The notes beneath the pieces were generated by a model. That model was not told the origin of the DNA and ran no database searches. It worked only from the letters and a program-made list of their open reading frames with translations. Shown one piece after another: positions 6,449-21,001 of a stretch of 45,809 nucleotides of DNA. Made by a program: the position numbers and the translations under genes. The DNA comes from Macrostomum lignano (Eukaryota). The stretch's first letter is position 1. The number at the start of each line of letters is the position of its first letter. The DNA lies in contig NIVC01004442.1 in NCBI GenBank assembly GCA_002269645.1, positions 1 to 45,809 on the forward strand. Direction: 5' to 3'.

Positions 6449-6517
6449 TTAACTTGCACGTCGTTCGCCGTCTGCAATGGTACAGTGGGTGCATTTCTGG
6501 GAGATTTCAGGGTTCAA
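6449..6517 (-). CDS. Probable exon 2 (cytoplasmic tail LNPEISQKCTHCTIADGERRAS*) of membrane-protein paralogue 1
   Basis: CAG acceptor at 6518-6520 (minus) just downstream of a (GTCT)n pyrimidine-rich run. Phase 0 matches the exon-1 donor; 69 nt ending in TAA. Confidence 0.55.
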   Translation of the reverse strand: MNPEISQKCTHCTIADGERRAS

Positions 6518-6530
6518 CTGATTTGCCAGG

Positions 6531-6584
6531 CAGACAGACAGACAGACAGACAGACAGACAGACAGACAGACAGACAGACAGACA
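6531..6584. repeat. (GACA)n microsatellite
   Basis: Direct reading. Confidence 0.97.
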
Positions 6585-9500
6585 GACACTAAGACCCTAA
6601 GGCACTAAGGCACTAAGACACTAAGGCACTAAGACACTAAGACACTAAGACACTAAGACACTAAGACACTAAGACACTAAGACACTAAGACACTGAGACA
6701 CTAAGACACTAAGACACTAAGACACTAAGACACTAAGATACTGAGACACTAAGATACTAAGACACTAAGACACTAAGACACTAAGGCACTAAGACACTAA
6801 GATACTAAGACACTAAGACACTGAGACACTAAGACACTAAGACACTAAGACACTAAGATACAAAGACACTGAGACACTAAGATACTAAGACACTAAGACA
6901 CTAAGACACTAAGACACTGAGACACTAAGACACTAAGACACTGAGACACTAAGATACTGAGACACTAAGATACTAAGACACTAAGACACTGAGACACTAA
7001 GGCACTAAGACACTAAGATACTAAGACACTAAGACACTGAGACACTAAGACACTAAGACACTAAGACACTAAGATACTAAGACACTAAGACACTAAGATA
7101 CTAAGACACTAAGACACTGAGACACTAAGACACTAAGACACTGAGACACTAAGATACTGAGACACTAAGATACTAAGACACTAAGACACTAAGACACTAA
7201 GACACTAAGATACTAAGACACTAAGACACTAAGATACTAAGACACTAAGACACTGAGACACTAAGACACTAAGATACTAAGACACTAAGACACTAAGACA
7301 CTAAGACACTGAGATACTAAGACACTAAGACACTAAGATACAAAGATACTAAGACACTAAGGCACTAAGACACTAAGATACTAAGACACTAAGACACTGA
7401 GACACTAAGACACTAAGACACTAAGACACTAAGATACTAAGACACTAAGACACTAAGATACTAAGACACTAAGACACTGAGACACTAAGACACTAAGATA
7501 CTAAGACACTAAGACACTGAGATACTAAGACACTAAGACACTGAGACACTAAGACACTAAGACACTAAGATACTAAGACACTAAGATACTAAGACACTAA
7601 GACACTGAGACACTAAGACACTAAGACACTGAGACACTAAGATACTGAGACACTAAGATACTAAGACACTAAGACACTAAGACACTAAGACACTAAGACA
7701 CTGAGACACTAAGACACTGAGACACTAAGACACTAAGATACTAAGACACTAAGACACTAAGACACTAAGACACTGAGATACTAAGACACTGAGACACTAA
7801 GACACTAAGACACTGAGATACTAAGATACTAAGACACTAAGGCACTAAGACACTGAGATACTAAGACACTAAGACACTAAGATACTAAGACACTAAGGCA
7901 CTGAGACACTAAGACACTGAGACACTAAGATACTAAGACACTAAGACACTAAGACACTAAGACACTGAGACACTAAGACACTAAGACACTAAGACACTGA
8001 GACACTAAGATACTGAGACACTAAGATACTAAGACACTAAGACACTAAGACACTAAGGCACTAAGACACTAAGATACTAAGACACTAAGACACTGAGACA
8101 CTAAGACACTAAGACACTAAGACACTAAGATACTAAGACACTAAGACACTAAGATACTAAGACACTAAGACACTGAGACACTAAGACACTAACATACTAA
8201 GACACTAAGACACTGAGATACTAAGACACTAAGACACTGAGACACTAAGACACTAAGACACTAAGATACTAAGACACTAAGATACTAAGACACTAAGACA
8301 CTGAGACACTAAGACACTAAGACACTGAGACACTAAGATACTGAGACACTAAGATACTAAGACACTAAGACACTAAGACACTAAGGCACTAAGACACTAA
8401 GATACTAAGACACTAAGACACTGAGACACTAAGACACTAAGACACTAAGACACTAAGATACTAAGGCACTAAGACACTAAGATACTAAGACACTAAGACA
8501 CTGAGACACTAAGACACTAACATACTAAGACACTAAGACACTGAGATACTAAGACACTAAGACACTGAGACACTAAGACACTAAGACACTAAGATACTAA
8601 GACACTAAGATACTAAGACACTAAGACACTGAGACACTAAGACACTAAGACACTGAGACACTAAGATACTGAGACACTAAGATACTAAGACACTAAGACA
8701 CTAAGACACTAAGACACTAAGATACTAAGACACTAAGACACTAAGATACTAAGACACTAAGACACTGAGACACTAAGACACTAAGATACTAAGACACTAA
8801 GACACTAAGACACTAAGACACTGAGATACTAAGACACTAAGACACTAAGATACAAAGATACTAAGACACTAAGGCACTAAGACACTAAGATACTAAGACA
8901 CTAAGACACTGAGACACTAAGACACTAAGACACTAAGACACTAAGATACTAAGACACTAAGACACTAAGATACTAAGACACTAAGACACTGAGACACTAA
9001 GACACTAAGATACTAAGACACTAAGACACTGAGATACTAAGACACTAAGACACTGAGACACTAAGACACTAAGACACTAAGATACTAAGACACTAAGATA
9101 CTAAGACACTAAGACACTGAGACACTAAGACACTAAGACACTGAGACACTAAGATACTGAGACACTAAGATACTAAGACACTAAGACACTAAGACACTAA
9201 GACACTAAGACACTGAGACACTAAGACACTGAGACACTAAGACACTAGACACTAAGACACTACTAAGACACTAAGACACTAAGACACTAAGACACTGAGA
9301 TACTAAGACACTGAGACACTAAGACACTAAGACACTGAGATACTAAGATACTAAGACACTAAGGCACTAAGACACTGAGATACTAAGACACTAAGACACT
9401 AAGATACTAAGACACTAAGGCACTGAGACACTAAGACACTGAGACACTAAGATACTAAGACACTAAGACACTAAGACACTAAGACACTGAGACACTAAGA

Positions 9501-18873: not shown

Positions 18874-18951
18874 CTGAAAGACAGGAGTGACAGCTCATGA
18901 CAGTTCTACTAATTTGCAGCTCAGCTTTAATGCTGAATTACACCTATAAAG

Positions 18952-20477
18952 GCAGACAGACAGACAGACAGACAGACAGACAGACAGACAGACAGACAGA
19001 CAAACAGACAGACAGACAGACAGACAGACAGACAGACAGACAGACAGACAGACAGACAGACAGACAGACAGACAGACAGACAGACAGACAGACAGACAGA
19101 CAGACAGACAGACAGACAGACAGACAGACAGACAGACAGACAGACAGACAGACAGACAGACAGACAGCTGGGACAGACAGACAGACAGACAGCTGGGACA
19201 GACAGACAGCAGACATACAGACAGACAGACAGACAGACAGACAGACAGACAGACAGACAGACAGACAGACAGACAGACAGACAGACAGACACTAAGACAC
19301 TAAGACACTAAGACATTAAGAAACTAAGACACTAAGAAAGACAGACAGACAGACACTGACAGACAGACAGACAGACAGACAGACAGACAGACAGACAGAC
19401 AGACAGACAGACAGACAGACAGATAGACAGACAGACAGACAGACAGACAGACAGACAGACACTAAGACACTAAGACACTAAGACACTAAGACACTAAGAA
19501 AGACAGACAGACAGACACTGACAGACAGACACTCTGACAGACAGATACTCTGACAGACAGACAGACAGACAGACAGAAAGACAGACAGACAGACAGACAG
19601 AGAGACAGACAGACAGACAGATAGACAGACAGACAGACAGACAGACAGACACTAAGACACTAAGACACTAAGACACTAAGAAAGACAGACAGACAGACAG
19701 ACAGACAGACAGACAGACAGACAGACAGACAGACACTAAGACAGACAGACAGACAGACAGACAGACAGACAGACAGACAGACAGACAGACAGACAGACAG
19801 ACAGACAGACAGACAGACAGACAGACAGATAGACAGACAGACAGATAGACAGACAGACAGACAGACAGACAGACAGACACTAAGACACTAAGACACTAAG
19901 ACACTAAGACACTAAGAAAGACAGACAGACAGACACTGACAGACAGACACTCTGACAGACAGATACTCTGACAGACAGACAGACAGACAGACAGACACCA
20001 AGACACTAAGACACTAAGACACTAAGAAAGACAGACAGACAGACAGACAGACAGACAGACAGACAGACAGACAGACAGACAGACAGATAGACAGACAGAC
20101 AGACAGACAGACAGACAGACAGACAGACAGACAGACAGACAGACAGATAGACAGACAGACAGACAGACAGACAGACAGACAGACACTAAGACACTAAGAC
20201 ACTAAGACACTAAGAAAGACAGACAGACAGACAGACAGACAGACAGACAGACAGACAGACAGACAGACAGACAGACAGACAGACAGATAGACAGACAGAC
20301 AGACAGACAGACAGACAGACAGACAGACAGACAGACAGACAGATAGACAGACAGACAGACAGACAGACAGACAGACAGACACTAAGACACTAAGACACTA
20401 AGACACTAAGACACTAAGAAAGACAGACAGACAGACAGACAGACAGACAGACAGACAGATAGACAGACAGACAGACA
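18952..20477. repeat. (GACA)n microsatellite punctuated by short (GACACTAA)n blocks, intronic
   Basis: Direct reading; recurring module GACACTAA x3-5 then GAAAGACAGAC. Confidence 0.97.
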
Positions 20478-20488
20478 TCTATACGCAC

Positions 20489-21001
20489 CATCTGACTGGA
20501 GCGCCTCTTTCGCACACAGTAGACAGTCAAGCCGATGGCAAGACCGATGACCACCAGGGCCAGTGACACGCCAACGAAAACCCCTGTCTCGCGGGACCCG
20601 ACGTAGCCGGACAGTTTAGTGCAGCTCTCCTTTTGGACAGGCATTTTGCAGTCACCGGAACTCGTTTTCTCGTCCGCGCAACTAGCGAAATAGGTCCAGT
20701 CTTGGCTCACTGAGCAACGCTTCCTTTGCAGGAACTTTCCCTCGTCTCTGAGAAACGTCATTTTGACGAACAGGCCGTTTACGGTGCATGTCTCAACTTG
20801 GAGTCCAACATTCTGGAGCTGCAGCCTGGAAAGAGCTGCGAGAGTGGAAGTCCCGGACGAGTCGGGCAGTCGGCCTGTTATGGCATCGCAGCCAAGCCGT
20901 AGCTGCTCCTTCAACATCGAGGTGAAGCTTTCTTCGCACAAGCCATAATTGATGACAATGCAGAAAAGTAGCGCAACGAATAGTGGAGCTGGGTGTCTCA
21001 T
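20489..21001 (-). CDS. Exon 1 of uncharacterised type-I membrane protein, paralogue 2
   Basis: Signal-like MRHPAPLFVALLFCIVINYGLC; six ectodomain Cys; TM VFVGVSLALVVIGLAIGLTVYCV followed by RKRR; donor ATG|GTGCGT at 20488. Shares CDA[LI]TG and VETC..[DN]GL.[IV]K[LM]T with paralogue 1. Confidence 0.85.

Follow-up and report, generated by a model that had tools for sequence, protein, structure and literature searches.

Two tandem genes for predicted six-cysteine membrane proteins in Macrostomum lignano

What is encoded by two neighboring genes, here termed A and B, in a repeat-rich contig of Macrostomum lignano, and are these genes functional? The window considered is the entire 45,809-bp contig NIVC01004442.1 of M. 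lignano assembly Mlig_3_7 (GCA_002269645.1), throughout which tandem repeats are abundant. A first-pass annotation had described a pair of same-strand genes some 7 kb apart, and both indeed lie on the minus strand, where the ATG of gene A is at 14044 and that of gene B at 21001, i.e., 6,957 bp between them. The pair belongs to an undescribed, Macrostomum-restricted family, and A and B are paralogues and probably functional protein-coding genes of this small family, seen so far in Macrostomum only.

Homology, family membership and selection

When the full-length products of A and B were compared by BLASTP, 26% identity was seen (E=3e-8). Smith-Waterman alignment of the two ectodomains yielded a score of 69, as compared with 27+/-4.8 upon shuffling (z=8.7; not one shuffle out of 2,000 scored as high), while alignment of A-type and B-type profiles using hhalign gave 93.5% probability (E=2e-7). 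A and B are thus homologous far beyond chance and have their architecture and intron in common, in agreement with the earlier proposal that they are old duplicates.

The layout previously assigned to both products, namely, a signal-like segment, an ectodomain of ~110 residues, a transmembrane (TM) segment, a basic stop and a short tail, was recovered for each gene by hydropathy and sequence. The Kyte-Doolittle TM peak reached 2.42 in A and 2.59 in B, and the polybasic stretch next to it corresponds to type I topology. The positions of the six ectodomain cysteines reproduce exactly the reported spacings of 29-17-11-7-11 in A and 33-23-11-9-8 in B.

Relatives were sought by word-indexed searches of 5.8 billion clusters, using A, B and a further member (P0004) as queries, and by running a HMMER profile exhaustively against 1.84 billion representatives. 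Across both collections, no relatives beyond the proteins designated P0001-P0007 were found, with the profile search returning just three Macrostomum-type clusters. The family is, therefore, lineage-specific, as had been suspected. A-type members comprise the copies in the window and at a near-identical locus (L004), P0001 and P0002; B-type members are P0003, P0006, P0007 and P0004. The named M. lignano relatives are BOX15_Mlig019706g1/g2 and BOX15_Mlig012933g1 (B-type), together with BOX15_Mlig026583g1 and A0A1I8J169 (A-type). Gene A shares 96% identity with A0A1I8J169 (exon 1) and 57-62% identity with Mlig026583g1, i.e., P0002, the product of a paralogue termed A'.

In an alignment of six members, D37, V63, E64, C66, G70, G80, C84, C116, R152, R154, R155 and Q158 are invariant. 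Both genes in the window encode all of the elements by which the family is defined, these being a predicted signal peptide, six ordered cysteines, the C-D, V-E-x-C and G landmarks, a TM segment and the juxtamembrane sequence R-[KR]-R-R-x-x-Q-[ML], which stops exactly at the phase-0 intron. The longer motifs proposed earlier, CDALTG/CDAITG and VETCSADGLVIKLT/VETCTVNGLFVKMT, are present in both genes but are kept only in part across the family, reading CDALTS in A' and CDIIMS and VESCVVKGFIFNMS in P0004. Cys5 sits two alignment columns apart in A-type and B-type members, and Cys4 is displaced by one column in P0004. The C-terminal tail is about 17-20 residues long in the family proteins and holds no tyrosine-based or other family-conserved signalling motif. 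The tail of P0004 (L003 646-660) reads RKRRYNQL and includes a YxxPhi/YxN-type motif; this is not a family feature, since the M. lignano proteins are without it (SSQM, KRQM). Similarly, a furin-type shedding site considered in the juxtamembrane segment of A (KRKCKSVRKRTKK) was rejected as a family feature, since a deletion has removed this segment from A' and B-type proteins do not have it.

Examination of the related loci revealed that the order of B followed by A recurs at two of these, with both genes on the same strand and with starts 5-7 kb apart. At L004, B lies at 10001 and A at 15443; here, A is identical to that of the window (exon 15443-15925) and B differs by one residue. At the paralogous locus L002, a B-type sequence, B', lies at about 5087 and an intact A' at 10001. 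B' (5015-5640) is a pseudogene that shows 84% DNA identity to window B, comprises at least four fragments of the open reading frame (ORF) and carries indels of +5, +3, -12, +1, +5 and -8 nt, four of the six being frameshifting. At L001, B is present (P0003) and no A was found in the 10 kb downstream. Searches by tblastn and six-frame hmmsearch yielded no further paralogues beyond A, B and B' in the window and three related loci, the family profile recovering just the known family loci there. The tandem of B upstream of A is older than the duplications that gave rise to the other M. lignano loci. Near-identical redundant copies, one B pseudogene and one loss of Cys1 together represent birth-and-death turnover. 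In the DV1 assembly, blocks with identity of at least 95% add up to 180 Mb (PMC5730564), and the existence of copies at 95-99% identity is attributed to the duplicated DV1 karyotype and assembly.

Selection was addressed by Nei-Gojobori estimation of non-synonymous (dN) and synonymous (dS) substitution rates and their ratio, omega. Comparison of B with P0004 gave proportions of non-synonymous and synonymous differences (pN and pS) of 0.38 and 0.80, respectively (Fisher p=4e-17), which argues for purifying selection. The B copies of the window and L004 differ at one non-synonymous and three synonymous sites (dN 0.003, dS 0.025, omega 0.10). As regards A and A', several results point to residual constraint. 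Under simulated neutral evolution, both ORFs would remain open with P about 0.04 and all six cysteines would be retained with P about 0.04. Each of the three indels seen when the A and A' proteins are aligned is in frame, as opposed to the four of six frameshifting indels of B', which has undergone a similar degree of divergence. Judged from the sequences, the overall pattern looks like long-term purifying selection, with recent duplication then bringing a relaxation of constraint and the loss of genes.

Gene structures, annotation and transcript support

Exon 1 of gene B (20489..21001, minus strand, as are all segments of both genes) comprises 171 codons, from the initial Met to ...RKRRSSQM. 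It encodes a putative signal peptide (residues 1-22, 21001-20936), an ectodomain (residues 23-139, 20935-20585) with cysteines at positions 38/72/96/108/118/127 and a TM segment (residues 141-163, 20581-20513) followed by RKRR. The phase-0 intron (18874..20488, GTGCGT...TTTCAG) is filled from 18953 to 20477 by (CAGA)n / (TGTC)n microsatellite repeats and also has a few TGTCTTAG units. Exon 2 (18844..18873, acceptor TTTCAG/AAC) adds NHSTLVEIA and a TGA stop. The junction originally proposed, 20489/18873, is exact, with the spliced product being identical to P0007, i.e., PAA47464.1 (BOX15_Mlig019706g2), a hypothetical protein of 180 residues.

In gene A, exon 1 (13568..14044) comprises 159 codons, from Met to ...RLRRKRQM, and encodes a putative signal peptide (about residues 1-21, 14044-13982), an ectodomain (residues 22-131) with cysteines at positions 36/66/84/96/104/116 and a single N-glycosylation sequon, N109-R-T, and a TM segment (residues 132-151, 13651-13592) followed by RLRRKR. 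The intron (6472..13567, phase 0, GTAAGT...ATTGCAG) consists nearly entirely of a (AGACACTA)n / (TGTCTTAG)n satellite of ~7 kb (6584-13556, ~90% matches), after which comes a (TGTC)n run. As described in the first-pass annotation, a phase-0 GT donor lies immediately 3' of the Q-M codons in both genes. By contrast to gene B, the junction first assigned to gene A, 13568/6517, had to be revised, with the acceptor actually lying at 6472/6471 (ttgcag|ACGGCG). This assignment is based on the ends of two relatives, ...RQM-TANDVQLNAVA in P0001 (...RQMTANDVQLNAVA) and ...RQM-TVNHVRLL in P0002, and on alignment with L002, where a 6-nt indel falls between the two candidate acceptors and where, as the alignment is read here, translation continued from the upstream acceptor soon runs into a stop. 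Exon 2 of gene A has its homologue in the final exon of P0002 (L002 12087), and the corrected product matches 6471-6439 by tblastn. The last exon of gene A accordingly spans 6436..6471, encoding TANDVQVNAVA and a TGA stop, such that the coding sequence ends 13 nt beyond position 6449, where the region had been taken to begin.

Whichever copy is considered, the only intron of A or B is filled with one common repeat family, (TGTC)n / (TGTCTTAG)n, of very variable length. The intron measures 7.1 kb in window A, more than 5 kb in the L004 copy of A and about 1.6 kb in both A' (L002 about 10480-12086) and window B, and is about 272 nt long (10514-10785) in the 96-99% identical copies of B at L001 and L004. 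Repeat length is the chief difference between otherwise near-identical copies.

The genes had also been presented as unrecognised, which holds for gene A, for which no model exists on the contig, but not for gene B, already annotated as encoding a hypothetical protein. GenBank models of this assembly were derived from a genome-guided RNA sequencing (RNA-seq) transcriptome from which transcripts overlapping repeats were removed (PMC5730564). Given this origin, gene B, its copies Mlig019706g1 and Mlig012933g1, and A' (Mlig026583g1) can be considered as transcript-supported. In addition, an intron-less 909-nt Logan contig from run SRR28338163 (L003) contains a 193-codon ORF, that of P0004, whose product is 48% identical to B. 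Because this ORF runs unbroken across the intron position, the contig represents a spliced transcript and shows expression in another species.

Database names of near-identical members conflict, including 'Conserved plasma membrane protein', 'Secreted protein', 'LRRCT domain-containing protein' and 'Uncharacterized protein', and are presumably automatic labels. The LRRCT assignment, carried by the gene B product in UniRef and implying a four-cysteine cap behind leucine-rich repeats, was rejected, as no PF01463 or leucine-rich repeat was detected in Pfam at E<=10 and the 180-residue product offers no upstream leucine-rich repeats.

Predicted protein, fold and competing explanations

From their sequences, the A and B products are predicted to be type I single-pass membrane proteins of 170-180 residues with a probable cleavable signal peptide, in which the six cysteines would form three disulfides. 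A final micro-exon encoding 9-11 residues completes the short tail. Such a tail would be too short and too poor in motifs to signal, so that A and B would act as membrane-tethered binding modules. Most likely, they would serve as surface ligands, as adhesion or recognition molecules or as accessory subunits of another membrane protein, acting through the ectodomain and through contacts made laterally by the TM or juxtamembrane region, and not as receptors in their own right.

As had been noted earlier, the ectodomain falls outside known families, with nothing being found in Pfam, among PDB sequences or by Foldseek searches against the PDB or BFVD. For six members considered at E<=10, Pfam returned only scattered sub-threshold matches (DUF4780, GAPT, Podoplanin and EACC1) that did not recur between members and stem from TM or low-complexity segments, while a profile search of PDB sequences returned matches to the TM region alone (E>=0.026). 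Foldseek comparison of the AlphaFold2 (AF2) models of both proteins with the PDB, and of the B model with viral models in BFVD, gave no matches at E<=1e-3. At these same Pfam and Foldseek thresholds, no Ly6/uPAR, TNFR, EGF, Ig or C-type lectin domain was detected. The two models, for which overlapping family alignments were used, present the same order of elements (a1-a2-b1-b2-b3-a3-b4), suggesting that the ectodomain may adopt an alpha+beta arrangement of a four-stranded sheet and three helices.

Several observations weigh against A and B being functional surface proteins of this kind. Signal-peptide cleavage and the disulfide pattern are both inferred from sequence features, and the AF2 models, built from alignments of 6-7 sequences, are of moderate confidence only (pLDDT, the predicted local distance difference test score, of 62.5 for full-length A; pLDDT 76.8 and predicted TM-score 0.65 for the B ectodomain). 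The B ectodomain is without an N-glycosylation sequon, and sequon positions are not conserved in the family. In P0003 (L001 10001-10513, Mlig012933g1), Cys1 is replaced by Ser (LGSDAITG), such that one ectodomain cysteine would be unpaired; this could reflect early decay or else the dispensability of Cys1. For A vs A' (dN 0.24, dS 0.29, omega 0.82; 0.70 for the ectodomain alone) and for window B vs the L001 copy (dN 0.016, dS 0.025, omega 0.63; six non-synonymous and three synonymous differences), omega is not significantly different from 1. Because these paralogue values are not significantly below 1, some copies may already be decaying. Moreover, gene A has no annotated model either on this contig or at L004, and its exact product, tried in three splice forms, is absent from a collection of 15 billion proteins. 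It is likely that the missing model is due to repeat filtering, since the 7.1-kb satellite intron would trip such a filter. Finally, the literature, including large supplementary tables covered in part, held no usable record of expression, localisation, interaction or function for Mlig019706, Mlig012933, Mlig026583 or SRR28338163.

Of the other explanations considered, the possibility that A and B are reproductive or partner-recognition surface proteins, borne on gametes or reproductive epithelia and diversifying by sexual selection or through self/non-self recognition, is unlikely but fits a number of the findings. The family is lineage-restricted, its genes are found in tandem and subject to birth-and-death turnover, and paralogue dN/dS is high (0.63-0.82). 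The proteins of reproduction-related genes in Macrostomum are more divergent, and such genes are less easily found from one species to another (PMC7336406), although this offers a base-rate hint only. At the same time, the rapid diversification under selection proposed earlier was not supported, given that overall omega never exceeds 1, that paralogue values are indistinguishable from 1 and that comparison with the distant orthologue P0004 clearly reveals purifying selection. In the comparison of A with A', only the signal peptide and the TM/tail, both short segments, reached about 1.0-1.06. Rather than an expanded polymorphic repertoire, there is one A-type and one B-type lineage with near-identical copies, and copy redundancy is accounted for by the duplicated DV1 karyotype and assembly. 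Like A and B, the fast-evolving gamete-surface proteins IZUMO1, SPACA6 and TMEM95 are small or medium type I proteins with a cysteine-stabilised N-terminal ectodomain and a short tail. These contain the 'Izumo' domain, a four-helix bundle with a beta-hairpin hinge; A and B differ in showing no match to PF15005 in Pfam, and none of the structures of these proteins was among the Foldseek PDB matches.

It is quite unlikely that A and B assist a multi-pass receptor, channel or transporter as its accessory or chaperone subunits, working by TM and juxtamembrane contacts in a logic like that of RAMPs, KCNE or Nav beta and possibly forming an A/B heteromer. RAMPs (PF04901) resemble A and B in having a signal peptide, a cysteine-stabilised ectodomain of ~100 residues, one TM segment and a very short basic tail, and cannot signal alone. 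In the same vein, A and B are small, with a very short tail free of family-conserved signalling motifs, the juxtamembrane RKRR..Q[ML] is the most conserved non-cysteine feature and the adjacency of A and B has been kept. The RAMP ectodomain is a three-helix bundle. For A and B, a four-stranded sheet with three helices is instead predicted, RAMP did not appear in the Foldseek output and Pfam offered no match to RAMP or any accessory-subunit family. Furthermore, the TM segment is poorly conserved between A and B types, with omega of about 1 for the TM segment and tail of A vs A', and the B' pseudogene adjoins an intact A', showing that the pair is not an obligate locus-level unit.

A highly diverged alpha+beta roll of the cystatin-like or NTF2-like type, and not a new fold, is an equally doubtful reading of the ectodomain, which could then serve as a protease inhibitor or bind some small ligand. 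Such folds, in which helices pack on a curved antiparallel sheet as in the A and B models, are the best, although weak, Foldseek neighbors: the top matches of the B model were de novo cystatin-fold and NTF2-like curved-sheet designs, SnoaL and ketosteroid isomerase, with the same classes appearing weakly for the A model. The best of these, the cystatin-fold design 4r80_A (prob 0.97, TM-score 0.34/0.50), was nonetheless assigned E=0.075, and no match reached E<=1e-3, with TM-scores being at most 0.5 and root-mean-square deviations of 6-12 A. No natural cystatin appeared in the Foldseek top 50, Pfam gave no cystatin, NTF2 or SnoaL at E<=10, QxVxG is absent from the sequences and, unlike A and B, cystatin and NTF2 families have neither a membrane anchor nor a six-cysteine framework. 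It is very unlikely that A and B are founders of an undescribed extracellular fold serving as a paired cell-surface recognition module, e.g., between sperm and egg or between partners, with turnover driven by sexual conflict in hermaphrodites.

That A and B are non-functional or dying, i.e., orphan ORFs of recent origin, subject to neutral drift in a redundantly duplicated genome full of repeats and sharing an architecture without a role, is the least probable explanation, since the M. lignano paralogue dN/dS values not significantly below 1, the frameshifted B pseudogene, the Cys1 loss in P0003 and the unannotated gene A split by its satellite intron are offset by a pN far below pS relative to P0004 (p=4e-17), by retention of cysteines and architecture at 48% identity, by the values of about 0.04 under neutrality for each of ORF integrity and six-cysteine retention in A vs A', by the in-frame nature of all A vs A' indels and by the existence of transcript-derived models and a cDNA contig.

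If A and B are indeed functional surface molecules, they would represent one more taxon-restricted membrane protein family, possibly with a new small disulfide-bonded alpha+beta ectodomain. A lineage-restricted family of this type is fairly ordinary and does not in itself point to a new recognition system, and fast-evolving orphans are nothing out of the ordinary in this genus; the pair opens no long-standing question. M. lignano is a model for regeneration and sexual selection in which RNA interference, in situ hybridisation and transgenesis make function testable. In practical terms, a splice site was corrected, the unannotated gene A was identified and a chimeric legacy gene model was flagged.

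Intergenic region and neighboring genes

Between A and B lies an inverted repeat (17815-18027 / 18287-18499), with 213-nt arms that are 94% complementary and a 259-nt spacer, which looks like a foldback element or a miniature inverted-repeat transposable element. Operon-like co-transcription of B and A was considered and rejected, because a 4.8-kb repeat-bearing spacer with this foldback element separates the genes; the sole model joining B' and A' (P0005) is an evident chimera. This legacy UniProt model, A0A1I8JL47 (1,063 residues, 'Peptidase S1 domain-containing'), runs through the B' pseudogene into A'.

A ceramide-synthase-like gene (TLC, PF03798) lies upstream of B and in divergent orientation, at about 24700-31900 on the plus strand, with coding pieces at about 28830-29043 and 29135-29290. 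The window shares this neighbor upstream of B with L001 and L004, where it is annotated. C-rich satellites of 16-46 nt crowd the introns of the gene, accounting for the strong negative GC skew seen at 24-32 kb.

Two ORFs of mobile elements were also noted, both on the minus strand. The first (23061-23624, 187 residues) matches the MULE transposase domain PF10551 (E=4e-10) after a Cys/His-rich, possibly zinc-finger-like stretch, and represents a Mutator-like transposon fragment. The second (37666-40380, 904 residues) matches reverse transcriptase (PF00078, E=2e-29) and RNase H (PF00075, E=7e-12), as expected of a retrotransposon, probably of the type without long terminal repeats, and lies inside a GC-rich block at about 38-44 kb, where GC content is 53-56%, as compared with about 32-44% over the first 24 kb.

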